DNA of 63,986 nucleotides, filler included, from Reticulomyxa filosa (lineage: Eukaryota > Protista > Foraminifera): NCBI GenBank assembly GCA_000512085.1. It is 17 parts of 17 records of this genome, joined end to end, with 100 filler letters (N's around TTAATTAATTAA, not from the genome) between each part and the next. Parts side by side here need not be neighbours in the genome. Positions count along the whole stretch, not along the records: positions 13,704 to 38,926 come from ASPP01010646.1; 16 more parts are not named here. One strand, written 5' to 3'. The notes beneath the pieces were generated by a model. That model searched no databases. It was not told the origin of the DNA and saw nothing but the letters and a program-made list of their open reading frames with translations. Below are positions 14,607 to 32,135 of the stretch, one piece after another. The position numbers and the translations under genes are program-made. The stretch's first letter is position 1. Every line of letters begins with the position of its first letter.

Positions 14607-16742
14607 ATGTCCATTTTTGAAAACCTTGACAATGAATCTGAAATGAAAACATCAATTTTGAGACTGGATACTCAAAAAATAGTGGACACAATAACAAGGT
14701 CCTGGGACGAAACTGTACTCGAAACGTTTCGTTACACAATAAATTGTACTCTTCTTGTCACACACTTTTATTTTTGCACTAAAAAAGGTTGAAAGCGTAT
14801 ATTCGGATTGAAAATCAATCACCGAGTTTTGATGAAAAAATCTACGAAAATGGAATGCAAGAGAAGGCATTAAATTTATTGACAAATTGGGTGAAAAAGC
14901 AGTCAATAAAAGGACTGAACATGCAAATTTTGAAAGAAAAGAACATGACTCCGTTTATTTTTATTGAAGTTGAAGCATTCAACACGAAATGTAATGAGTT
15001 GAGTTTGTCTTGAGAATCGGAGTGTGTAAAAAAAAAAAGAGGGACAGAGAATTACATAACATTAACACGTACATATACACATACAAATGGTAACAAAGGA
15101 CGGTGCTAATATATGGTCACTTTGACAAACAACCAGTTAAGCAAAAGGGACTCCAAATCATCCCCTCCGGAAAAGAATGACAAAAAAAAAATTTGATGAA
15201 TAGCCATTAACGCAGCAGTGGGATAGCGAATTAGGACCGTATAAACCTGTGATTAAAGATGGAAAAGTTGAATTGTGTGAATTGCCTCTTTCTTATTGTT
15301 GCAGAGTGAACAAAAAAAAAAAAAGCACAAAATGAATGAATAGTTGTACGGACGAGGTGGTGCAGATGATGGTTATAGTATCTTCGCCGCAATCGATAGT
15401 ATTCGTGCGTTACAAGTGCAAAACGCATCCCATCCCAGATGTGTAATAACTATCGAAGGAAGCGAAGAGTCGGGCAGTCCACATTTGAACCACTATTTGG
15501 ACCAGTTGAAAGATCGCATTGGCACACCATCGTTGAGGATTACCTTTTTTTTTTTTTTTTTTTTTGCGTTTGCATTTCTAGGCACGCCATAACATCTCTT
15601 TCTGTTTCGATTGAGGGGGTGATACAGCTTGGTTATATGTTTGGACTCTGGTGCTGGAAATTATGAGCAGCTGTGGCTCACTACTTCGGTTTGAAACTGT
15701 CTCTGTTTTGTTTGACCTTGTCGCGAGTTAAGCGACACTCAATTCAAAAAAAAAAAAAAAGAGTGGATCGTATTTTTTTTTTTTTTTTTTTTAGAGTGCG
15801 TCCACAGAAAAATGCTAAAAAAAAAAATGTGCACTTTTAGCTACGTGGAGTGATGTCCGGAAAATTGCGAGTGCAATTGTTGAAAGAAGGTATTCACAGT
15901 GGCGAAAGTGGTAAAGTACGAGATTCGTTTCATGTAATGCGAAGCTTGCTGGACAGATTCGATGAGGACACTGGCGAGTGCAAAGTGAAAGAGTTAATGA
16001 GTAAAATCCCCTCCAACCATGTAAAATACGCGCAAGAGATGGGCAAGGTCGTAGGAAAGGACGTATGGACGACACTGCCACTCTATGAACATGCACAGTG
16101 CCAATTGCCAATGACTTTGGAAAATGTGCATGAAATACTGTTAAACAGTACGTGGAGGCCGCAATTGTGTATTGTCGGCTGTGACGGACTTCCTGATTTG
16201 AAAGGAGGGAATGTGCTGCGCCAATTCACCACGCTAAAATTATCGGTCCGCTTGCCTCCAGATATCGATCCTGAACATGCGTTTTATACTTTAAAGCGTT
16301 TGTTTGAGTCCGATCCTCCTTTCAATGCTAAAGTGGAGTTCACCAAAGGTATACACACATCTTTTGTTTCATTTATATGTACGTAACTCTGTTGTGACTT
16401 GAAAAGAGTTTATTGTTACGTTTCTTTTTTTGTTCCTTACATTGGACAGGATCATGGGGAAATGGATTTGTCTGTCCCGATTTCGATCCGTGGCTCATGA
16501 CGGCATTGCAAAATGCCTCCAAACTTTTTTTTCATAAACCTGCTCTAATGATGGGCGAGGGTGGCACGATCCCCCTAATGGGCCAATTGCAAGCAAAGTA
16601 TCCTAAAGCACAGTTTGTTGTGACTGGAGTGTTGGGCCCAAACAGCAATGCGCATGGTCCAAACGAGTTTTTACACATTGATTTTTGCAAAAAGATTATT
16701 TGTTGTATTAGTTATGTCTTAAATGCCGCTGCGACACATTGA
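14607..16742 (+). CDS. M20/M25/M40 family metallopeptidase (DapE/ArgE-like dipeptidase), multi-exon
   Basis: Motifs YGHFDKQP, LYGRGGADDGY, IEGSEESGS, CLDSG, HSGESGKV, GEGGTIP and NAHGPNEFL across exons. Confidence 0.92.
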
Positions 16743-17161: not shown

Positions 17162-17468
17162 GATGTGGCGTAGCTTAATATGTAAAGCCCGCCGAACTTA
17201 CAGTGACTTGATCACATTATGGCTAAAGCCATCTTTGGAGCGTTCTTCAGAACCTGGAAGTGGTGCAAATTCAAGGGTTAATAAGTTGACAGTGTGTTGG
17301 TGTGCATCTTATGTATACTAAGTCGCATGGTCATATACATTCTTGCCTACGCACTAACACACGATCGTTTATATTGCTGTTGGCAATATTGACAATGTAA
17401 GCGGTCGTGCAATATGAAACTCCATATAATTTAGCGGGGATTTGTGTTCGATTCACAAAATCGACATT
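17162..17468 (+). ncRNA. tRNA-like structured element with ~240-nt insert, copy 1
   Basis: A box TAGCTTAATATG at 17171, D stem GCTT/AAGC, T arm TTTGTG-TTCGATT-CACAAA at 17441-17459, A-rich tail; colinear with copies 2 and 3. Confidence 0.7.
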
Positions 17469-18803
17469 AAAAAATAAATTGTTTTTAAAAAAAACATTAC
17501 ATAAATTTGGACATACTTTATAGTATGATGATTTGTATTATATATTCTAGATTAAACATTTACTATTGTTCGATCGCAATAAGTATAATTTGGACAATTG
17601 TCAATAAAGGATATACTCTGTGCAAAATTCACGTTAAAATTGTCGTTATCATTTTTTTATTTCAACATTTTACAAAAAAATAAAATGGAAATGACAAAAG
17701 AAATGTTCTATATGATGAACAACGATCAAAGAGATCCAAAAGTGGGTGAAAACCTGATTATTAATCAATTTTAATGAGTCCTTTGACTTTGCAATTATTG
17801 TTTTGAAAGGTAATGCGATGAAATGATTGATTAATGAATAACATGACCTTCAGAGTCTCAATGACATATCACAAAAACGATGGAAAAGAAAATAAATCAA
17901 TTACTCAAACATTTTGAAAAAATGAACGTAGTTGAACATGTACAACAGTTAAATGCTGTCTCAAGATAAAAAAGATTTTTTCCACTCAAGTTATCAACTT
18001 TGAATGGTCACGTCATTTTATGATCATCAAACAAAAGAGAAGTTAAAAAAACCGTAAGTTTACTTTTTTTTGACGGAGCATTAAACATATTTTTTTTTTT
18101 TATACTATGTTAAATTAAAAAAGATTCAAAATTACAATTGAAAAAACTTTTTTGGATTTTTGTGTTATCATTTTTGCCAATTAATATTCTTTAAAAATGT
18201 TGAATATTGTATAAAAACAGATAAATAGTAAATAATAAGAACATATCATATCTCTACGAACATGGACTATTTCTTCAATCAAGTCTACATCACAAAGATG
18301 AAAAAGAGAACCGAATATCTACACAACAGAATTACAAACTGATTTTAAGTCTTGATAAATTAAGAATGCAATATTACGGACACAATTTGCAATGCACAAT
18401 GAAATGAAAAGATTGATGAAATGATGGAGAAAAAAAAGAATAATATTGTGACAATAAGTCACAGTTGGAAGTAAAGTTTTGTGATATGTCTTGTGAATAG
18501 TACCACTTTTAAAAACAACAAACCAAACGAAAATTACATAGAAAAGAGAAAGTGGAATAATAAATGCTGCATCTCAGCCAAAGCAGCAAGCAAATATTAA
18601 ACGAAGATTATTTCTAACGCTAATCAGGCAGTTTATTCTAATATCGACAATTGCACAAATTATACTTATTGCGTTCAAACTAATGGTGAATGATCACAGC
18701 ATAGTCTGCATAATATTTCTACAATATGAACAAACTATCACAACAAAGTATGTCAATGTCTTTAATTTTTTTTATAAAGTTAATAACAAATTTTTTTTAT
18801 TAA

Positions 18804-19103
18804 TGGCATTGGTTGGACTCGAACCAACATCTCCGCTACATTATATGGAGCTGTCGTATTGCACTACCTCACACATTGCTGATATTACTATCAACAATAT
18901 AAACGATCTTGTGACAGTGCATATGCAAAAATACATATTGCCATGTGACTTTACACATATTTACACAATAATCACCCCAATACTGGTCAGCATATCAACC
19001 CTTTTGAGGTCGCATCATCTCCAGAAATTACGAAGACTGATCGCCATAATCCGATCAAGTCACTATAAATTCAGCTTTATTTACTCATTAAGCTACGGCC
19101 GCC
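18804..19103 (-). ncRNA. tRNA-like structured element with large insert, copy 2
   Basis: Reverse complement reads GGCGGCCGTAGCTTAATGAG...TGTTGATA-GTAA-TATCAGCA...GTTGG-TTCGAGT-CCAAC-CAATGCCA followed by an A-rich tail. Confidence 0.7.
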
Positions 19104-20544
19104 TCATTGTTAATATTTAATTTATTTTTTCCACTTATCACTTTCACTTTGCCAATAAGTCATTTTATTGACAACAATGAACATCTTTAAATAATTTTTT
19201 ATATAAAAACATAAATAAAATCCGACTCCGCAAAAGAATGTTTTCTGAATTAAAAAATTGCGAGAACAAAACTTGATTGACATCTGGCAGCGAACAATCG
19301 AAAGGTGCATAATCTGTATTAAATCAAAAATATCACCATTTTATAGATCTTGTTCACATAACAATAACACCTTTTGACTTGTTGTTCTTCGGTCCAAGTC
19401 CGAACGTAACAAAGTCATAAAGATTAAACAAAGAAATAAATTTAACTTTTACTTTCTTTATTGTTGAATATCAATAAAGAAAGTGATTTGCAAAAACAAA
19501 CTGAAACAAACGAAGTAGCAAACGACAACGTCAACAAAAAAAAAGCAATTCAGACATTACTCATAACTTATAAATTTTATTTTGTTTCTTTTGTGTTTTT
19601 TCGAATTACAGATTCCGCATTTGGTCTCAGCTAATCTCTTTCAGTGAAAAAAATTGTATTACACTATTTAGAAATTATTGAATAAAACTTAATTGAACTT
19701 GCAAAAAAACTATTGAAAAAAACATTTATAAAAATTACAACAATAATGATTATTTGTTTGAATGTCATACTCTTTTTAATTGGTGATAACATTATGAAAA
19801 TGTGACTTTGCATCATATATAAATTTGATGGTCGTATTTCCTATTTGTTTGTAGTATTTTTCCATTAAATTAATTGTTGCCATTCAACATTTAAGTAGGT
19901 ATTACAAAAAAATGAACAATTGTGCAAGTCTTAAAATTTTTCTAATTTTGGTTTTTCCTACAGCTTGGTTACTTATTTTTTTTGTTTGTTGATTCCTGTT
20001 GTGAAAGATTGACCTACTAAAGACTTGCACAAAGCATAATAAGAAAAGAAGGACTATATTTCTCTGAGTTTCGTTGTTGCAAGAGCGATTTGTACTGTAC
20101 TGTTGATTTTGCTTGTTTCATGGAAAAAAAACACATCCTCTCTTTTTAGATAGATAGTACTGTTTAATGCCAAGGCTCAAGTGAACATGAAATCCTTGTC
20201 GTTTACTTATTGAACGATCGCTCAGAGAGCAATACCTTTCGATTACATATTTTTACTTGAATAAATCATATCAGTTATAATAAAAATTTGGTGTATGTAT
20301 TGTATTTATTATTTTGGCTGCAATTAAGTAATTAACTAAAAGTTTATAACGTTTTAGCCCGCGGACAATAGATTATAAATCTTGAAAATAGCAGGAAAGG
20401 CAGAACGATGAAGGATAAAAAAAAATATTTTAAAATACCATTGTATATATTAAACAATATAAAGTTAATATTTTATTACATGAACAATTTCAATTTTGTT
20501 TTTTGAACTTGGTCAACATATTAAAAAAAAGGTAAAGCATTCTC

Positions 20545-22176
20545 ATGATGGCTGAGCCAGAAGAAAAAACGAGCAGTGATTTGGAAGAAAAAAAGGAAGT
20601 TGTGGTAGAAGAAAGTGGTACTAGTGTTCATGTGACAAAAGTTCCTCTCTTTACAGTGGCTTTGGACGCAGATCCCTCCGTTCGTTGGAAGGAGATAATC
20701 ACAGCATACAAAGTTAACAAAATAATGGCTGAACAATGCAACACACACCAAATCCAAATAAACTCATATGAATATATTCAACATATACAGAAAGATTTTG
20801 AAAGAGTGAGGAAAGTGATAAATCAATTTGTGGAAAATGAAGGTGGCAAAACGGGTGAAATATTGAAGTCAATAATAACAGGGACGTTGAAGCAATTCAA
20901 ATGGATGGTATATTATAAAGAAGATTTAGAGGCTATTTCAGCGCTATCTGGCATGCCAATTGGTAAAATTTCTTTTCTTCATATATGTACATATATATAT
21001 AAACAACAAACAAGATTTTTTTAAAAAAATGAAAGGTGAATTAATAATGATGCAATTGATATACGAAGCAACGGCATTATGCACAAGCATAGTAACAATT
21101 GATCGAAAGAATGAAAGCAAGCCAATCCATATCCGAACGATGGATTGGGAAATGGAGTTTTTGCAACCTTTAACGATTGAAATTCAGTTCACGCTCCAAA
21201 ATCAAGTGATCTGTCATTGCACAACTTGGGCAGGATATGTCGGTATTTTGACGGGACTCTATTTTAATCACTCCGAGTCTTCCAAATCCTTTGAATGTGT
21301 CAGCGTTAGTGTGAATTTTCGTGTGACAGGAACAGGCTATTGGACGAACCTTAAAAAAACTTTAAGTGGTAGTTGGCCCATTGGATTCAAACTAAGAGAT
21401 TTGTTGACCACGCCACATCAATCATTTGACTCCGTTGTTTCTTCCCTGAAAACGGCAGAGTTTATTGCGCCAGTTTACTTTACTATTGCTGGAAGTCGTC
21501 TCGGTCAGGCTATCATTATTACTCGTGATCGCACCGAACATGAACAACCTTATTCCTTCACTGATGAAACACCTTTTATTGTTCAAACTAATATTGGTTT
21601 GCAAATATTTATATACATTGCTTATTTATTAATTTTATATAATTTTTGTTTGTATGAATTAAAAAAGATCATTGGTCCAATAAACAAGAAGATGATATCA
21701 TGTGGTCGATCAGTCGAAGACGTAATGTGAAGAAACAATTGCTCCAATTACTGGAACAAAACAAATTGGGTGTAAATAGTGATGAATTGTGGGATTTAAT
21801 AAGTATGCCTCCAATCTTTAATGATATTACTGTTTATGGCACTTTGATGATTCCATCTTTGGGATACCTTGAAACCAGAATACCTCATCCTCAACTAGGA
21901 TTCAAACCCGTCTCTCAAAAATTCGCACAAGACTCTGAAAAGCTAATTTGGAAAACCTGCACAAAGTGCAATACTCGAGTTCATGTTTCATTAAATGTGA
22001 AAGGTGAATGTGTTCATTCAGGTGAATGGCATGACGACTATGACAAATGCAGTACTGTTAAATGCGGTTGGAATTTAGGACTTTCAAAAATTGGAAAATG
22101 CCATTGGTCTTGTTGCTTTAATACCAATTTCGATTCTTTTTGTGTCAAGAGTGACTTTCATATTGTTTCTGATTGA
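20545..22176 (+). CDS. Acid ceramidase/NAAA-like Ntn hydrolase with a C-terminal Cys/His-rich domain, multi-exon
   Basis: LDADPSVRW, nucleophile CTSIV, HIRTMDW, TWAGYVGILTG, APVYFTIAG, ITRDR and VQTN motifs; C-terminal CTKC...CVHSGEW...WSCC. Confidence 0.88.
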
Positions 22177-22380
22177 GACATATATTTTTTTCTTTTGCTT
22201 ATTTTCATTGAATATAACTTCATCATTTCTGGAAACAAAACAGTTATGACTTCTCTTGAAAAATTCAGAACAAAGTGTAATAAAAAGGCATTTCAGAAAG
22301 TAATTTGAAACATTGCTAGTATAAATACTTTTTATTTTTTGTTCGTTTAATTTAAAAAAATATTCCATAAAATTTAAGGA

Positions 22381-23145
22381 TTAAATTTGTGAAAAAAAAG
22401 GTTGTGATGTAGGTAAGTCTGGAATGTCCAAACCCCAAAATCCTTCAGGAGTATTTTCTTTTTTGAAAGTGCTTCGATGACGTGAAACATGATTATGCAA
22501 CGAAGTATTCCCATTGACTGCACCAATGCCATTGTAAAATTGTTGGCATTCATAACATGCATGTCCAGGCAATTTTTGTTTTTCTTTACCACGAGTTCCG
22601 GTTTCATAATATCTGGTTTGTGGTTTCTGTGATTGTAAAGGAAAAGAGTCGTCATGACATTGTTGATGTTTGTTGATTGGTTGAGAATTGAGGTTGATCT
22701 TTTCATAAGAGATCCTAGTTATTGATTGACTTGAATTAGAACTGGGTTTTTTTTGTATCAATTCAATAGATGAATCACTATCTTTGCAATGACCATCATA
22801 CATGTCATTATTGTTTATGATTGCATTCATCTTTGTATGTAATTCAATTCTATTATCTTTTAGATTTTGCTGAGATAACAATTCTTGAAACTTTTGAAGT
22901 AATTGCTCATATTCTTTTTGTAATGCCTCATGTGATCTTGTTACACATTTCAATTTATCTTTCAATTTTTGCTCTTTTCTTTGGTAATGTTCCTTCATTT
23001 TATTAAGTTCTATTTCGTATAAACATTGTTGGGGCGTGTCTTCATGATTGGTTGATACTTGTGCTGTGTTCCCGGAATATCTTGATTTTCGGCGTTGTAG
23101 TGACCGTGATGAAAATAATAGTGGTGAGAGTTGTTGTTGTTGCAT
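22381..23145 (-). CDS. COM1: CtIP/Sae2/COM1 DNA end-resection protein
   Basis: N-terminal coiled coil plus the C-terminal signature LPGHACYECQQFY...VSRHRS...NTPEGFW. Confidence 0.85.
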   Translation of the reverse strand: MQQQQLSPLLFSSRSLQRRKSRYSGNTAQVSTNHEDTPQQCLYEIELNKMKEHYQRKEQKLKDKLKCVTRSHEALQKEYEQLLQKFQELLSQQNLKDNRIELHTKMNAIINNNDMYDGHCKDSDSSIELIQKKPSSNSSQSITRISYEKINLNSQPINKHQQCHDDSFPLQSQKPQTRYYETGTRGKEKQKLPGHACYECQQFYNGIGAVNGNTSLHNHVSRHRSTFKKENTPEGFWGLDIPDLPTSQPFFSQI

Positions 23146-23279
23146 TTTGTTATTTTTGTTTTTAACTAAAGTTGGTTGTGATTGTCGTAAGTTATAGCAA
23201 GTTTTTTTTTCTGTTTCTGAGAGACTCCTTTTTGTCTTACTGTTTTCCGTTTTAAAGAGCAACAATTTTTTTTTAATTT

Positions 23280-23520
23280 AAAACAGAATCTGAAGTTATT
23301 CAAAGAACTAATCATACTAAATTTGGTTTTGCTGCTGGTATTTTAACACAAGATCCACAAAAAGCAATTAGAATTGCTCAATCTTGGTTTTAAACAATCT
23401 GGAATTGGTCGTAAATGGGGTAAAGAAGGGCTTATTTGTTATACTCAAACTAAATCTATTTTTACAAATAATCATATTATTCCAATTTCTTATCTACCTC
23501 ATTTATGGTATATATAATCT
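23280..23520 (+). pseudogene. Aldehyde dehydrogenase C-terminal fragment (truncated, internally deleted)
   Basis: [33 protein letters not shown] joined directly to [24 protein letters not shown]. The intervening ALDH segment and the whole N-terminus are absent. Confidence 0.75.
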
Positions 23521-24432
23521 TAATTGTCCTTTTTATTCAATTGTTTTTGTTTTATATTTTTAATTTTGTGACATTTATACTTTTCACGAACATTTTATTT
23601 CTTCTAAGATAATAAATTCGTAAATCCAAATCAAAGATTGCAGCATCATTTATATTTGTAATTTTGTCTCAATTTTTTATATCAAAAAATCTCAACTTTA
23701 CAACTTTTCCTTTTGTCATGCAAGTCAATAATTTTGATTAAACTCTGAGTCATTCCTTTTTTTGTTCATAAAACGATTTATTCATACACATTTATTATTA
23801 AATTACAATACATTCAAAAGTGATAACTTGAATAGAAATATACTTTTTTATTCTTGAGATGGCGCTAAATTGTTGATACGAGTTTCTTTCAACAATTTTG
23901 CAAGTTCAATTAAGCTTTATAATAATTTCTAGATAATGTAATAAAATTTTTTTGCTGAAAGAGATTACAGAGTATTTCGATTCAAAAAACTACAAAAGAA
24001 ACAAAATTCGTAAGTTATGAGTAAAGTTCTGAGTAAAGTTCTGAGTGCCCTTTTTTGTTGTTGTCGTTGTCGTTTGTATCTTCTGTTGTGTTTTTTAAAC
24101 TGCTTTCTTTATTTATTCTACAGTAAAGAAAGTCAAAGTTAAGTTTGTTTTATTTGTTTAATCTTTTTGACTTTGTTACTTCGGACTTATGCCGAAGAAC
24201 AGGTGAAAAAAATTTTATTGTTCTATGAACAACATTTTAAAAAAATTCCATTTGATTTGATTAATATATTCTGGACCATTACATTGTTGCTACCCATACT
24301 GAACAAAGTTTTGTTCTTGGAATTTTTTATTTCTCCGAAAAAATACTCGGAGTCGGACTATTTTAATATTTTTGTTATTTAAATGTTTTTTATCTTATTG
24401 GGAGAAAAATACATCAAGTCTTAACAATTAGT

Positions 24433-24746
24433 GGCTGCGTAGCTTAATATGTAAAGCCCGCCGAATTTATAGTGACTTGATTACATTAGGGCCAGCCATC
24501 TTTGGATAGTTCTTCGGAACTTCTGGGGGTGGTTCAATCTCAAAAGGGTTGATAGGTTGGCCAGTGTGTTGGGGTGCGTCTTGATTGTATATTGTACTAA
24601 GTCGCAGGGTCATATACATTCTTGCCTACACACTGACACACGATCGTTTATATTGCTGGTAGCAATATTGGCAATGTGAGCGGTCGTGCAATGTAGCAAC
24701 TCACTATAATGTAGCGTAGATGCGGGTTCGAGTCCTGCCTCTGACC
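24433..24746 (+). ncRNA. tRNA-like structured element with ~240-nt insert, copy 3 (best preserved)
   Basis: A box at 24440; B box GGTTCGAGTCC at 24725; GTTC-TTCG-GAAC hairpin at 24509-24520; long GCAA-capped hairpin at 24639-24688; TTATAGTGA/TCACTATAA closing helix. Confidence 0.75.
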
Positions 24747-25908
24747 TTTATTAAAAAAAAAAACAAAATTTATTTTATTTTTTAAAGTTAATAGCAAAAA
24801 TATGTGCTTTTACATTGTAGTGTTGATTTATTTAAATTTAGAAGTTCCATATGGATTGTTGGTGCTGTTCACGTGATTGTGGCTATTGTAATGGTAAAAT
24901 GATTGAGGCTGTCGCAATTGTTTTGGACACAGTGGGGCGTTGTTAAGTGTTTTATGGCGCACTACGCAAATACTTGCTATCACTTGGAATTGGCCGATGC
25001 GTTTGTAAAAGTAGTAGATTGATCATATATGTCAATGGTAAGAATGTACTTACAATGATGATCCAAGATTTGAAATTTAGGTTTTATCTTCTTGGCACAG
25101 CGAGCAAGTTGTTACATCCGGCATTTTTCTCCAAAATCTGCATGTGATCTTTTGACAGCGTCGCCATAACCAAACGAGGTCCATGCGTAAATCAACATGT
25201 CATTGTCTTTATGGATTATTGCCCATTTTTTTGCAACTTTCATCATCTCCAATAGCTTTCATAAATATTGGCTCCTTTTTGTTTTGTTTTTTTTAAGTTT
25301 CATCTTCAAGTTGTGTCAACATTTTCATTGTTTATTTGTTTTAATCAACTCTAAAGATCCCACATTTGTAAAATCATAAGCATAAATCAATAAATCTACT
25401 TTGGGTAAATCAAATTAATACATTTGTATTATGAGTAGGAATCAATTAAAACTTATTTGATGGTAATGTCCAGTCTGTAGGAATTTATATTCTTCGTGTA
25501 GAAAGGAGTAATAGACCTTGAGAAGAAAAAAGACGAACGACGGCCTACCAAAAAAACGAGGACGATAGGATGAACAATACCAGTTCTGTGCTCGGAGGGA
25601 TACGTCCAATCGATCCTTCTGCAGTTAAGCTGTTCGTTGCAGTAGTTTAGTTTCAAAAGTTCAAAATCATCCCCCAAAGTACGTTGCAACATTTTTTTTT
25701 GGAAAGCTCTTTTTTTTAAATGGACTTCTTTTTTGTTTTTTGTTTGTCAAACTTTTTTTACTTTCTTTCGCGTCGGCTGTAGTGGTAATGCAATATACAT
25801 TATGTTTTTATTGACCACGCAGGTTAAAAAGGCAAACAAGGATTTTTTCAAAAGATTGATATCTAACAATTCGAAATATTTATCAATATTTTTCTTCAAA
25901 ACAGGATA

Positions 25909-26793
25909 ATGACCGCAGAACCAATCAAAAGTGAAGAACAATGCGTATCACTTCCAATCCCAGCTGGAGACGACAATAAGCGTCTATATGAAATTCCTCC
26001 GACATACTCTGGTTGTGTCGAAAATGTAATAATTGTGTTGGGCCAATGTCTACAGCCAGACGGTTCCCCGCATCCATGGCTGATCGACAGGGTCAACGGT
26101 GCTACGAGCCTGTTGAAAACAAGACGTTTACCTCTTCCGCACTCTCCAACAAAGCCGATGACAAAGCAAAAGCGTCAGAGCAAATCAAGACATTATTTAT
26201 AGTGACAGGAAGTGACGTTTCTAACACAAAGACGAAAGACGAGTCTACCAAGCACGTCATATGACCGAAGCGAAATGATGTACCGTCTTCTGAGAGAGCG
26301 TAATATTCCTTCAGAAAACATAGTTTTAGAAGGCAAAGCAACAAACACAATGGAGAATTTTTATTATTGTTTCCTGCTTTTGCACCAAGCACATGTTTCG
26401 TCTTTGAAGTTGAGATGTTAGAATTGTTCATGGACAGCCAAACCAAACAATTCTTTCCAAAAAAAAAAAATGGGAGGTAGGTCACTATTTGTCGTTACCA
26501 GTGACTTTCATATTAAACGGTCCCGTTATTACTTTGGACATCTTTTTCGGGTCGAGTTATTTTCTATTTCAAATCCCAAGCAATCCATTATAGAAACTAC
26601 AGTGAAGGCTGAGCTTGTGGATTTCATTGCTGCTCGTTCCAACTGCGGAAAATGGAAATTCGAAAAAGAAGAAAACATACTCAAACACAAGCTATATAAT
26701 GAATTTTCTAAAGAAACGGCAAAGACATTTTGGAGCAATAAGTTGGCCGACGAAAAAAGAGACAAAAGCTGGAAGGTGTCGATCATTTCTTAA
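25909..26793 (+). CDS. DUF218 (YdcF/ElyC/SanA-like) protein; frameshifted in this assembly
   Basis: IIVLGQCLQPDG..WLIDRV, LFIVTGSD, TEA/EMMYRLL, IVLEGKATNTMEN and VVTSDFHIKRS motifs, spread over three reading frames. Confidence 0.8.
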
Positions 26794-28491: not shown

Positions 28492-31400
28492 ATGTCTCAA
28501 ATATCGTCGTTTTGTACACTCAATAATTGCGTACAAGGATGTCCATTTCGAGACTATTGTGCTTGGACTCACATTATCCCAGGACATTTTGTAACTATTC
28601 GTAATATTCAGAACCAAGATGATTTAGGGATACTAAAAAATTTACTAACACGTAATTTGATGTTTTAATCTTTTCTTTTTGTATACGCCGTAAACTGAGT
28701 TGTATTAACCAAAAAAAAGTGGTTCTCCAGAACGAATTTTACCATATGCACGGATATTCGGATCAACCAAAGTGTTGCACGATTGAATTTTGTTCTGCAA
28801 AGGTCAGATATATCCAGTTCTGAGAGAGGAGAGAAAAAGATGTACAACACGTACAAAGACGACACAAAACATAACAATGAGAATAGACACGTGATGAGGC
28901 AATTTACAAGTTAAAAATGTGGGGCAGCGACAAAGGCGTCCTTTTTTCAACTGAGTCCCCTAAAGAAGTCGATTCGAGTTCTTTTTTTTATTTCGCAACT
29001 TTTTTTTAACATTTTCAATTTACATAAACAAACAAATAAAAAAATAATCATATAGAATCGGTAATTTTATTAAATTGAACACGTTTTTGAACATACAGCA
29101 AAAAGAAAAACGTATACACGTTTTTTTTTTTGTGTGTGCGTATATAGGGGAAAAAAACTGAATCGAAACAAAGAAAACAATTATGTCGTAACTTCAACAG
29201 TGTTCAGGGTTGTCCCGAAGGAAAAAATTGCGAACAGCGACATATGACACGAAGCAAGTTTTTGACGATAACAAATCTCCCAGACGTAATCAATAGTTTT
29301 TCTAAACTCAGAACGTTTGTTCGAAGTGCGTTTGATCGGCCTCCCCAGTTTAATATTCATAGTTGCGGTAATTTTCGCAAGTGTTATTCCCTGGAATTTG
29401 CCACCGAAAAAGTGTGTGGCATTTTTCCTTGCCTTTTTATAATCTATCTTTTCCGCGTTTTTCACAAACGCAAATTATAACAAACGATATATTTTGTATT
29501 GTTTTCGATTGTGACAAACTTTGCTTAGCATCGCGCAGCAGTGGAAAAGAAGCTTGAACCATTTGTGAAGAATGGAATTCAAGTAAATTACAATTCTCCA
29601 AAACAGACTTATTCTATTCTCAGTTGATACTACCTTTTCTTTTTTTTTTTAATGAAAATAGAAAATATTTAGGTTGGATTTTATGAAATATAGATCACGA
29701 AGACAACCCAGAAACAAGACCAAGAAAGATATGTAATCACTTTAACACCCCGAAAGGATGTTGGAAAGGTAATAATTGCCCGTTTCAACACGTGAACAAC
29801 AACTCATCCCAAATTGACAACAACCCGTTTCAATCAGGTATTGCTAATCCTTTCCAACAAGGCATTACTAATCCTTTCCAACAAAATGTTATTAATCCTT
29901 TCCAACAAGGTGTTATTAATCCTTTCCAACAAAATATTACTAATCCTTTCCAATACATTGATAACCAGTCATCGTCAAAGCACTCCGAATACAAGCCATT
30001 TCCGAATGGCGTGTGCTGGTATTTCAACACTCCAAAAGGTTGTAGTGCCGACAAGTGCGAATACAGCCATGTGCAGATCAGTGTGGAAGAGAAAAAAATG
30101 ATCAAATGTCCACAAAAGAAGTGCTCAGGTCGATGTCCCTTTGCACACAACAATGTCAATCACGACGATGCTGAGACAAACACATTTTGCACAAGATTCA
30201 ACTCCACACAGGGATGCAGAGGCAATTATAGATGCTTGAAAAAACACATTAAACCACCTATTTGTCTTACTGTTTATCATGTTCCATCGTTTATGAACAA
30301 ACACGAATATATTCTCTCATTGTTGGTAACTCCTCTCGGCAAAGAGTTTATCTTTGTCCACAGCCATCCTGATTTTCCTGATTGTTACACAATCGAATTT
30401 TCTAATTCTGAGGTTTGTTCAAACTCTATTAAATATTTTTATACGTATGTATATCTTTAACATGCTTCTTTTGGTTTTGATCAGTCACGAGACAAAGCAA
30501 AAAATTATTTGCAAAATAAACTCGAGAATGAAGATATCAAGTATTCCGAACATTCACCGCTCGAAGCGGAATTTGAATGTAAAAGTTAAGATCTTGGTTG
30601 TTGTATCTCCTTTCCCATGCTTTTTTTTTTCTTTTTCTTTCGCCAAACTATTTGTGTAATGCAATGATACAACAGAAATGCGCTCCTCCAAGTCGACAAA
30701 GCGAGAAACAAAAGAAGACGAAAAAACCGAATCTCTTCTCCCCTTGAAGAAATTGGAAGCTGTTTGGGTAATCATATATATATTTTTTTGGATTTAATTT
30801 CCATTTCATTTTTATTTCACTTGCGAAACAGCGCAACAAAAAAAAAAAGGAATGGAGAGACGATGATACCATATTACGACCTTATCCCAAAGACGTGTCC
30901 AATCAATTGGAACAAGCAAAATTGGGCGAGAAAGTTAAGCATTTTTGGACTGGACTTAAACAAAATCAAATTTTTTCATTGCAATTTATGTATGTACGTA
31001 TATGTGTATATATACGCACACGTACGTGTTATAGGTAACACATACCACATCGGGATGGACTTATGAAATTACAAAAATTGCGAGTGGCAAAGCAATTCAA
31101 AGAAATGTTTCCAGCAAAAGAGAGAGAGAAGTATTGAGAACAGTCGTGGAAAGTTACGTTTTTTTAATTTCAAAGCACAACTCACAATTGACAATTCGCC
31201 AATGCATTACATATAAATAACAGTCACGTACACGATTTCTGGTTCCCCGGATTGGTGGGATGTGACTCGTTCGTCAAATGAAACAGTAGAATTTATGCAA
31301 ATCAGTTGGAAAAATCAAAAAACTGCCGTGGAAAAGTTTGCTGCGCAAGCGGTAAATGAATTTTACAGCACTTTGGATAAAAAGCAGTATGAAATTGTCG

Positions 31401-32135
31401 CTGTCTATTTCGTTCAAAATCAAGGGCTTTGGAAACTCCACAAAGCTTTAGAGAGTTCCTTTTTTATTTTTTTTTGTCCGACTGACTTTATATGTGATTT
31501 GATAAAACAATATAAAGACCATTGGATCCAAGATCAAAGGCTTTCTGATCAAACAATAAATGTTCGTTACTTATGGCATGGTAAGCATTTCATATGTCTA
31601 TTGCAAAACTCAATTTGACAAATATGTTTAACATGTATAGGTACGGATACAGCGACTGTGAAAAAGATTACAGAAAGAGTTTGTTTTTGCTTACTCTTTT
31701 TTTTTTTTTTTGCAAAAACAACCGATTATTGTTTGGAATGATCAAAAAAGGGCTTTTTACGAGATTACAATAAAACCCATGCTTATGGCAAAGGTGTTTA
31801 TTTCGCAAAAAATGCACAATATTCTATTAACGGTTACGCAAAGTTCGATAATCCCGACGGATATGCCGAATTGCTATATTGTCGCACCATATGTGGTGAA
31901 AGCGTGCGCGGAGCAGGAAGTTATATCAGGCCTCCTGACAAAAAACACGTGAAAACCCAAGAACATGAAACTATGGGTTGATAATGACTCTGATCCTACT
32001 ATATTTGTCACTTGCAACGATAATCAATGTTTGTTCTGTGCTTTTCTTTCTTTTATTTCTTTGATACATTTTTGAGTTGTTTTGTTGCTTACAGCTTATC
32101 CGTGCTTGGAGCTTATAGTCAAACGATTGAACTGA
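28492..32135 (+). CDS. CCCH zinc finger / RRM-like / PARP catalytic domain protein (PARP12/TIPARP/ZAP-like architecture), multi-exon
   Basis: CCCH fingers (CTLNNCVQGCPFRDYCAWTH; CWYFNTPKGCSADKCEYSH; CTRFNSTQGCRGNYRCLKKH). PARP core RYLWHGT, AYGKGVYFAKNAQYS, LLYCRTICG and DNQAYPCL. Could be more than one gene. Confidence 0.75.
29822..29953 (+). repeat. Coding 24-bp tandem repeat (six NPF motifs, NPFQQxxx)
   Basis: aatcctttccaacaa units spaced 24 bp apart, in frame with ORF 29792-30460. Confidence 0.9.

Follow-up and report, generated by a model that had tools for sequence, protein, structure and literature searches.

The freshwater foraminifer Reticulomyxa filosa carries a real, undescribed, multi-copy tRNA-derived element. 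We analyzed a window of 63,986 nucleotides, i.e., the whole stretch of DNA along which positions are counted here, in which the element lies on contig ASPP01010646.1 (25,223 nt). R. filosa has at least three related tRNA-shelled genes, referred to as copies A, B and C, all of them intergenic and all on this contig. Judged by their sequences, the copies probably encode an undescribed ncRNA, because no working tRNA can be formed from them and no known RNA family was matched. Our best explanation, held tentatively and with somewhat less than even confidence, is a small family of tRNA-scaffolded ncRNA genes transcribed by Pol III.

Copies of the element and their flanks

Copy A spans positions 24433–24746 on the plus strand (314 nt), from tRNA position 1 (24433) to N73 (24746), and is the best-folded copy. 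It lies outside every annotated gene, and its neighbors are an annotated CtIP/SAE2 gene (22381–23315, minus strand) and a gene at 26076–26793. The locus described in the initial annotation is real at these coordinates, but self-comparison of the contig revealed two paralogues 5–7 kb away that had been overlooked. Copy B (17164–17466, plus strand, 303 nt) is 81% identical to A, is followed by a T5 run 15 nt downstream and has a 5′ flank unrelated to that of A. Copy C (18804–19102, minus strand, 299 nt) is 72% identical to A and 68% to B, identities being given with gaps. No ORF of more than 80 codons was common to the copies or their common flank. A profile search of the remaining ~17 kb of the contig found no fourth copy, and none was present in four other, paralogous R. 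filosa contigs (14.5 kb in total); together these make ~31 kb of other sequence, a small sample.

A and C have a common 5′ flank of at least 550 nt (23882–24432, plus strand; C side 19103–19723) with about 71–77% identity, which is evidence of a duplication at the DNA level. Identity between A and C is 77% in the element and 77% in the 5′ flank, i.e., the element is no more conserved than its flank. B and C share about 140 nt of 3′ flank (17467–17606, plus strand; C side 18642–18803), and the 3′ flank of A matches that of C through a 30-nt micro-inversion. Since flanks are shared between A and C on both sides and between B and C, we conclude that the copies arose mainly by DNA duplication. The homology between A and B, in contrast, has sharp edges at −10 and about +73, beyond which the flanks are at shuffle background; it starts at an AACAAT motif 10 nt before position 1. 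Copy C carries clear lesions: its D stem is half broken, it has a 14-nt deletion and an internal T5, and no T4 run follows for ~260 nt downstream. Because of these lesions, and because its likeness to A is no greater than that of its flank, copy C is probably a recently dead copy.

Several smaller observations concern the surroundings of the copies. The micro-inversion (24769–24798 versus 18761–18790) places a T run, a candidate terminator, on the sense strand in A and an A run in C. In the interval between B and C, fragments at 17795–17853 (minus), 18386–18420 (minus) and 17943–18006 (plus) repeat the 5′ flank of B and the far 5′ flank of A; the repeat of B's 5′ flank runs up to AACAATAA, without the element. 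These fragments are signs of repeated inverted duplication. The neighboring NAAA-CtIP segment has paralogues on two other contigs, ASPP01022119.1 and ASPP01023286.1, with 66–87% identity to window positions 19670–23372; segmental duplication is common in the R. filosa genome. On ASPP01022119.1, the annotation joins the NAAA part to an aldehyde dehydrogenase in a fusion, and CtIP is present in truncated form; the contig stops shortly before the expected sites of copies A and C, and further copies may sit at assembly breaks. The 5′ flank common to A and C contains two hairpins (24164–24235 and 19340–19430), with z scores of −4.1 in A and −1.6 to −1.8 in C; between A and C their loops differ but the stems are preserved. 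They may represent a regulatory element or else another small RNA.

The tRNA shell and its insert

All features of copy A are given on the plus strand. The 5′ part of its tRNA shell comprises the acceptor 5′ strand (24433–24439) and T8A9 with the D arm (24440–24457), which includes the A box (24440–24451). The 3′ part consists of a 5-nt variable loop with U48 and the T arm (24717–24738), with the B box at 24725–24735. T8A9, the D stem GCTT/AAGC, the 5-nt variable loop, the T arm GCGGG/CCTGC and the B box were all found where the initial annotation had placed them. It had also described a D loop without G18 and G19; G18 is indeed missing, but G19 is present (24451) and matches C56, and A15 and A21 are present as well. 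All three copies have the elbow contacts U8–A14, A15–U48, G19–C56 and T54–A58, and also A21 and A9–U12–A23; A15–U48 is the alternative Levitt pair. Compared with published consensus sequences (PMC7954030), the A box matches in all copies and the B box has 0–2 mismatches, at a spacing of 271–286 nt. Another B-like site, 91 nt away from the A box, has 2–4 mismatches, which is within chance.

Each copy has its acceptor stem broken in a different way. In the tRNA register, its 5′ strand pairs with 24739–24745 at four of seven positions in A, and only three of seven pairs are formed in B and in C. The anticodon stem is kept at 4/5 pairs in each copy; positions 32–33 are AA throughout, i.e., U33 is absent. 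No A-I pair is possible, as A32 faces an A, and no 3-nt bulge is found at the 3′ splice site. ARAGORN, run at default and with introns of up to 400 nt at relaxed thresholds, produced nothing but spurious folds at the 3′ end. When each copy was spliced in silico at 180 junction pairs, no construct reached either the default or the 95% threshold of ARAGORN. Because the acceptor is broken, positions 32–33 read AA, the A-I pair is lacking and no spliced construct passed ARAGORN, we conclude that the element gives no tRNA product, and the earlier judgement that it is not an ordinary tRNA was borne out. The more specific suggestion of a tRNA-Ile(UAU) with a giant intron did not survive: besides the missing U33, A-I pair and spliced tRNA, positions 34–36 in the tRNA register are TTT in A (24467–24469), CTT in B (17198–17200) and TTT in C. 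All three are lysine anticodons, which is perhaps a coincidence or else a clue to the parent tRNA. BLAST against phage sequences did not identify the parent tRNA, since all matches were generic ones to the T arms of many types of tRNA.

The T stem differs in every copy and yet is paired in 15 of 15 cells, with four of the five pairs changed on both sides. Shuffling, a control in which relatedness is ignored, reached this pattern in 8 of 500 cases, and random placing of the same number of substitutions keeps all five pairs with a probability of 0.011–0.026 per pairwise comparison. Between A and B, the T stem differs at seven of the eight positions outside the B box, compared with 14.5% in the body (Fisher P = 1.6e-5), which looks like old paralogues whose T stem is constrained in structure only and whose body is conserved in sequence. 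Since the B box alone needs no stem, the compensatory changes point to the shape of the RNA having been selected separately in the lineages that followed the duplication. The T-stem changes could, with lower probability, also come from repair templated by the hairpin or from recombination with ordinary tRNA genes at their 3′ ends; the similarity between A and B could stem from gene conversion instead of selection. We regard the conserved contacts and T-stem pairs as good evidence that the tRNA elbow is under selection, and the evidence that the insert is a folded domain as suggestive.

The insert lies between tRNA positions 37 and 38 and has 241 nt in A (24470–24710), 230 nt in B and 226 nt in C. 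As first read, the tRNA halves enclose a multi-branch domain within the 314 nt of copy A: its minimum free energy (MFE) structure of −120 kcal/mol (z −5.7, none of 100 shuffles as low) shows a long helix, a multiway junction and arms. The fold is strand-specific (z −5.8 for sense versus −2.4 for antisense), which fits an RNA rich in G·U pairs, not a DNA inverted repeat. The long helix is formed by the 5′ strand of the anticodon stem with its extension (24459–24487) pairing with 24690–24716. Although it is present as described earlier, its middle is perfect only in A (9/9, versus 6/9 in B and 7/9 in C); its lower part, next to the junction, has three two-sided changes in B/C. Arm 1 (24490–24562) contains the UUCG hairpin noted before, but instead of one 8-bp stem the MFE structure has a 5-bp closing stem (GGCCA/TGGCC) and two hairpins, at 24495–24533 (UUCG loop) and 24534–24552. 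Arm 2 (24563–24634, apical loop 24599–24605) and arm 3 (24639–24688), a 23-bp G·U-rich hairpin capped by GCAA, appear in the MFE structure as proposed. The hairpin of arm 3 is significant in all copies, with z scores of −7.8 (A), −4.4 (B) and −3.7 (C). Tetraloops had been cited as marks of function: arm 3 retains its GNRA loop (GCAA, GCAA and GUAA), but cUUCGg occurs in A only, and because it is private to this copy it is no evidence of function.

Covariation, which was clear for the T arm, is weak for the insert when judged from three sequences. In copy B, changed pairs of A's fold are kept at 0.35 versus 0.32 by chance (P = 0.35), i.e., B is neutral in this respect. In copy C, changed pairs are kept at 0.49 versus 0.38 (P = 0.045), with six two-sided changes where 2.3 are expected (P = 0.015). 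Measured against A's fold, 35 of the 170 non-gap cells in the insert are broken. Five helices of at least 7 bp are kept in all copies, compared with 0.8 in column shuffles, and several of them are mutually exclusive. One of the five pairs 24472–24478 with the arm 2 loop (24599–24605), the two being complementary in all three copies; this pairing may be a pseudoknot or a switch.

Expression model and rival explanations

The AACAAT motif (24423–24428, plus strand), which is common to the three copies, is a candidate Pol III start site. CAA is a promoter element of tRNA genes (PMC13578239), and we infer a role as CAA motif for AACAAT. The 3′ trailer of copy A (24747–24783, plus strand) consists of a short T/A stretch, an A11 run (24753–24763) and T4 and T6 runs (24773–24783). 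T runs 15–30 nt past N73 are candidate Pol III terminators in A and B; the absence of internal T4 runs in these two copies is not significant (P about 0.2). In yeast SNR6, a distance of 202 bp between A and B boxes is functional and bridged by TFIIIC (PMC9136082). A spacing of 270–290 nt is therefore plausible, although it exceeds that precedent.

We propose that the anticodon loop of a tRNA gene may have been replaced by a folded domain of ~230–240 nt, which would make the element a natural 'tRNA scaffold'. TFIIIC would bind both boxes across 271–286 nt by looping; Pol III would start at AACAAT and stop, in A and B, at the T run downstream of N73. The D and T arms would fold into a tRNA elbow that stabilizes the RNA and perhaps allows its ends to be trimmed by RNase P and RNase Z. 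The product, neither aminoacylated nor spliced, would accumulate as an RNA of ~300–350 nt, in which the tRNA shell would serve as promoter and chassis and the insert as the working part. The insert would most likely be a protein-binding scaffold with arm 3 as a double-stranded recognition site, which is the weakest step of the proposal. The family would grow by local segmental duplication and lose copies, C being probably dead. It appears possible, though short of probable, that the functional form is a full-length unspliced eukaryotic RNA, nuclear and uncharged, in which a tRNA elbow and a split internal promoter carry a multi-arm domain of ~240 nt. [quoted passage not shown] The reading as a Pol III gene family has its limits in that there are three copies only, from one species, with B neutral and A and C equally identical in element and flank.

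The initial annotation had offered a new Pol III ncRNA, a tRNA gene with a giant structured intron and an atypical SINE. The first of these is the best supported, by the compensatory T-stem change in three paralogues and by the intact boxes. An atypical SINE, i.e., a selfish Pol III retroposon with its whole body within the tRNA shell, is rather unlikely; its copies would go back to separate master genes, or to a single old insertion that was duplicated at a later time together with its flanks. Such an origin would agree with the A-rich run that, as in retroposed Pol III RNAs, directly follows N73 in all copies and is preceded by two or three T, but A runs of at least six are common in this DNA (4.5 per kb). 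Sharp A–B homology edges, intact A and B boxes and unshared damage in the copies also speak for it, and the segment at 17795–17853, which repeats the 5′ flank of B up to AACAATAA, lacks the element. This segment, however, does not run on into the 3′ flank of B, no clear target-site duplication was found, and A–C as well as B–C share long flanks. The small sample of ~17 kb of the contig and 14.5 kb of four others held no further copy. Moreover, T stems that are perfect but different in each copy do not result from neutral decay, and the boxes lie 271–286 nt apart instead of together in a 5′ head.

We consider it still less likely that the element is a pre-tRNA-like host from which TSEN excises the ~240-nt insert as a functional RNA, linear or circular, like Drosophila tric31905. 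The tRNA exons would then be only a processing cassette, so that the acceptor is free to decay, which fits an elbow that is conserved and an acceptor that is not. The insert sits at the canonical place in the anticodon loop, with 4/5 anticodon stem pairs in each copy, and a covarying tRNA intron of 113 nt that gives a stable circle is known; it was called unusually large (PMC4536317). But TSEN requires the A-I pair in a bulge-helix-loop (PMC10275265), whereas here both the A-I pair and the 3-nt bulge are missing and, in every copy, the 37/38 junction is within a helix. None of the 180 spliced constructs per copy was accepted as a tRNA, and the insert contains no conserved C/D boxes, which also rules out a box C/D RNA.

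That the copies are dead relics strikes us as improbable. They would descend from a former gene or from a tRNA gene hit by an insertion, would have been spread by segmental duplication, and would be silent or act only as TFIIIC-binding DNA. The equal A–C identity in element and flank, the neutrality of B against A's fold, the lesions of C and the decayed paralogues of neighboring genes would all agree with this. The compensatory T-stem changes, however, postdate the split of the copies, copy A is near-perfectly folded, and A and B keep both boxes and a candidate terminator.

A highly diverged housekeeping RNA (SRP RNA with a tRNA-like domain in place of Alu, RNase P/MRP RNA or telomerase RNA) or a group I intron in a tRNA is very improbable: ~300 nt with a long helix ending in a multi-arm junction is SRP-like in outline, but there is no Rfam match even at E 5–10, no SRP54 motif of SRP helix 8, no CR-I or CR-V (P4) motif of RNase P/MRP, no R and S elements forming a group I P7, no Sm site and no common telomere template in the element.

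Comparison with known RNAs

The earlier statement that the element belongs to no known family was upheld by Rfam searches at E up to 10 for the locus and up to 5 for the contig, in which nothing came near a gathering score. A pattern for arm 3 had one match in viral and five in metagenome contigs; all were chance matches that lacked the hairpin, the T arm and any wider similarity. A pattern for the 5′ half had no match in prokaryote genomes and viral contigs. No homologue outside R. filosa was found in viral, metagenome, prokaryote and phage collections, which contain almost no foraminiferal DNA, so that this result says little. The loci of NAAA and M20 homologues in other organisms had no tRNA-bracketed element.

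In its way of working, the element comes closest to tRNA genes that bear introns or to engineered tRNA scaffolds. In intron-containing tRNA genes such as Drosophila tRNA-Tyr CR31905 (tric31905), too, the boxes are spread by a structured insert in the anticodon loop and the geometry of the mature domain is kept. Unlike CR31905 with its 113 nt, however, the R. filosa insert has 226–241 nt, there is no A-I pair or bulge-helix, and the acceptor and U33 are lost. Engineered tRNA-scaffold RNAs are laboratory constructs with their cargo in the anticodon stem and an intact acceptor stem. The R. filosa element likewise encloses a foreign folded domain between tRNA ends and elbow, but would be a natural eukaryotic case and has a broken acceptor.

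The initial comparison with tmRNA and vault RNA holds for the topology, but only there. In tmRNA, tRNA-like ends enclose a large domain via an extended helix at the anticodon position, and the size is similar. The R. filosa element, in contrast, has a D stem and no paired acceptor, and is nuclear, lying between intron-containing genes. A tmRNA was rejected as identity because of the D stem, the absence of G3·U70 in A and C and of a tag frame, and because neither ARAGORN nor Rfam made such a call. Vault RNA, which was rejected for lack of an Rfam match, comes from a small clustered Pol III gene family with internal boxes near both ends (PMC10498592); the R. filosa element is about three times longer and has real D and T arms instead of the vault RNA's terminal panhandle.

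With tRNA-derived SINEs, BC1 and snaR-like Pol III RNAs, the element has in common the type-2 internal promoter, the diverged copies and the A-rich 3′ run. It differs from tRNA-SINEs in that the tRNA part is split around the body, copies share flanks and no target-site duplication was seen. YrlA Y RNAs and mascRNA/menRNA use a tRNA elbow for stability and processing without aminoacylation (PMC10424219). Their likeness to the R. filosa element lies in this uncharged tRNA mimicry, and neither has a 240-nt insert at the anticodon. The free ends of YrlA are located at the Ro60 stem, and mascRNA, of ~60 nt, is cut from a Pol II transcript.

If transcribed, the element would represent a new architecture for tRNA-derived RNAs, in which a laboratory trick for stabilizing RNA cargo has evolved naturally in a eukaryote, and proof of a full-length transcript would establish a new RNA class. 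In the literature, coverage of which is incomplete, we found no lineage-specific ncRNA family in foraminifera; within that coverage, a transcribed element would be the first candidate found for this group. The proposed mechanism, if true, would stretch the A–B range of TFIIIC from the 202 bp of SNR6 to 271–286 nt, and the element would stand, as a form still alive, midway between tRNA genes with introns, SINEs and new Pol III RNAs. If it is a SINE, it would still be one of a split-head type. As ARAGORN and Rfam are blind to the element, similar genes may be missed in other protist genomes.

Three further features of the contig were noted. A separate contig of 1153 nt carries a copy of the M20 peptidase gene (15746–16557) with 99% identity, which is an allele or a recent duplicate. 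An annotated gene at 29792–31952 encodes a 762-aa protein with NPFQQ repeats, CCCH-like zinc fingers and a PARP-like YLWHG motif; by eye it resembles ZAP/PARP12-type proteins, and its first exon had no match in Pfam. Finally, the contig end (36709–38926) has 16–20% GC compared with about 33% elsewhere and contains an intronless Asn-rich ORF of 585 aa, so that it is possibly a chimera or foreign DNA.
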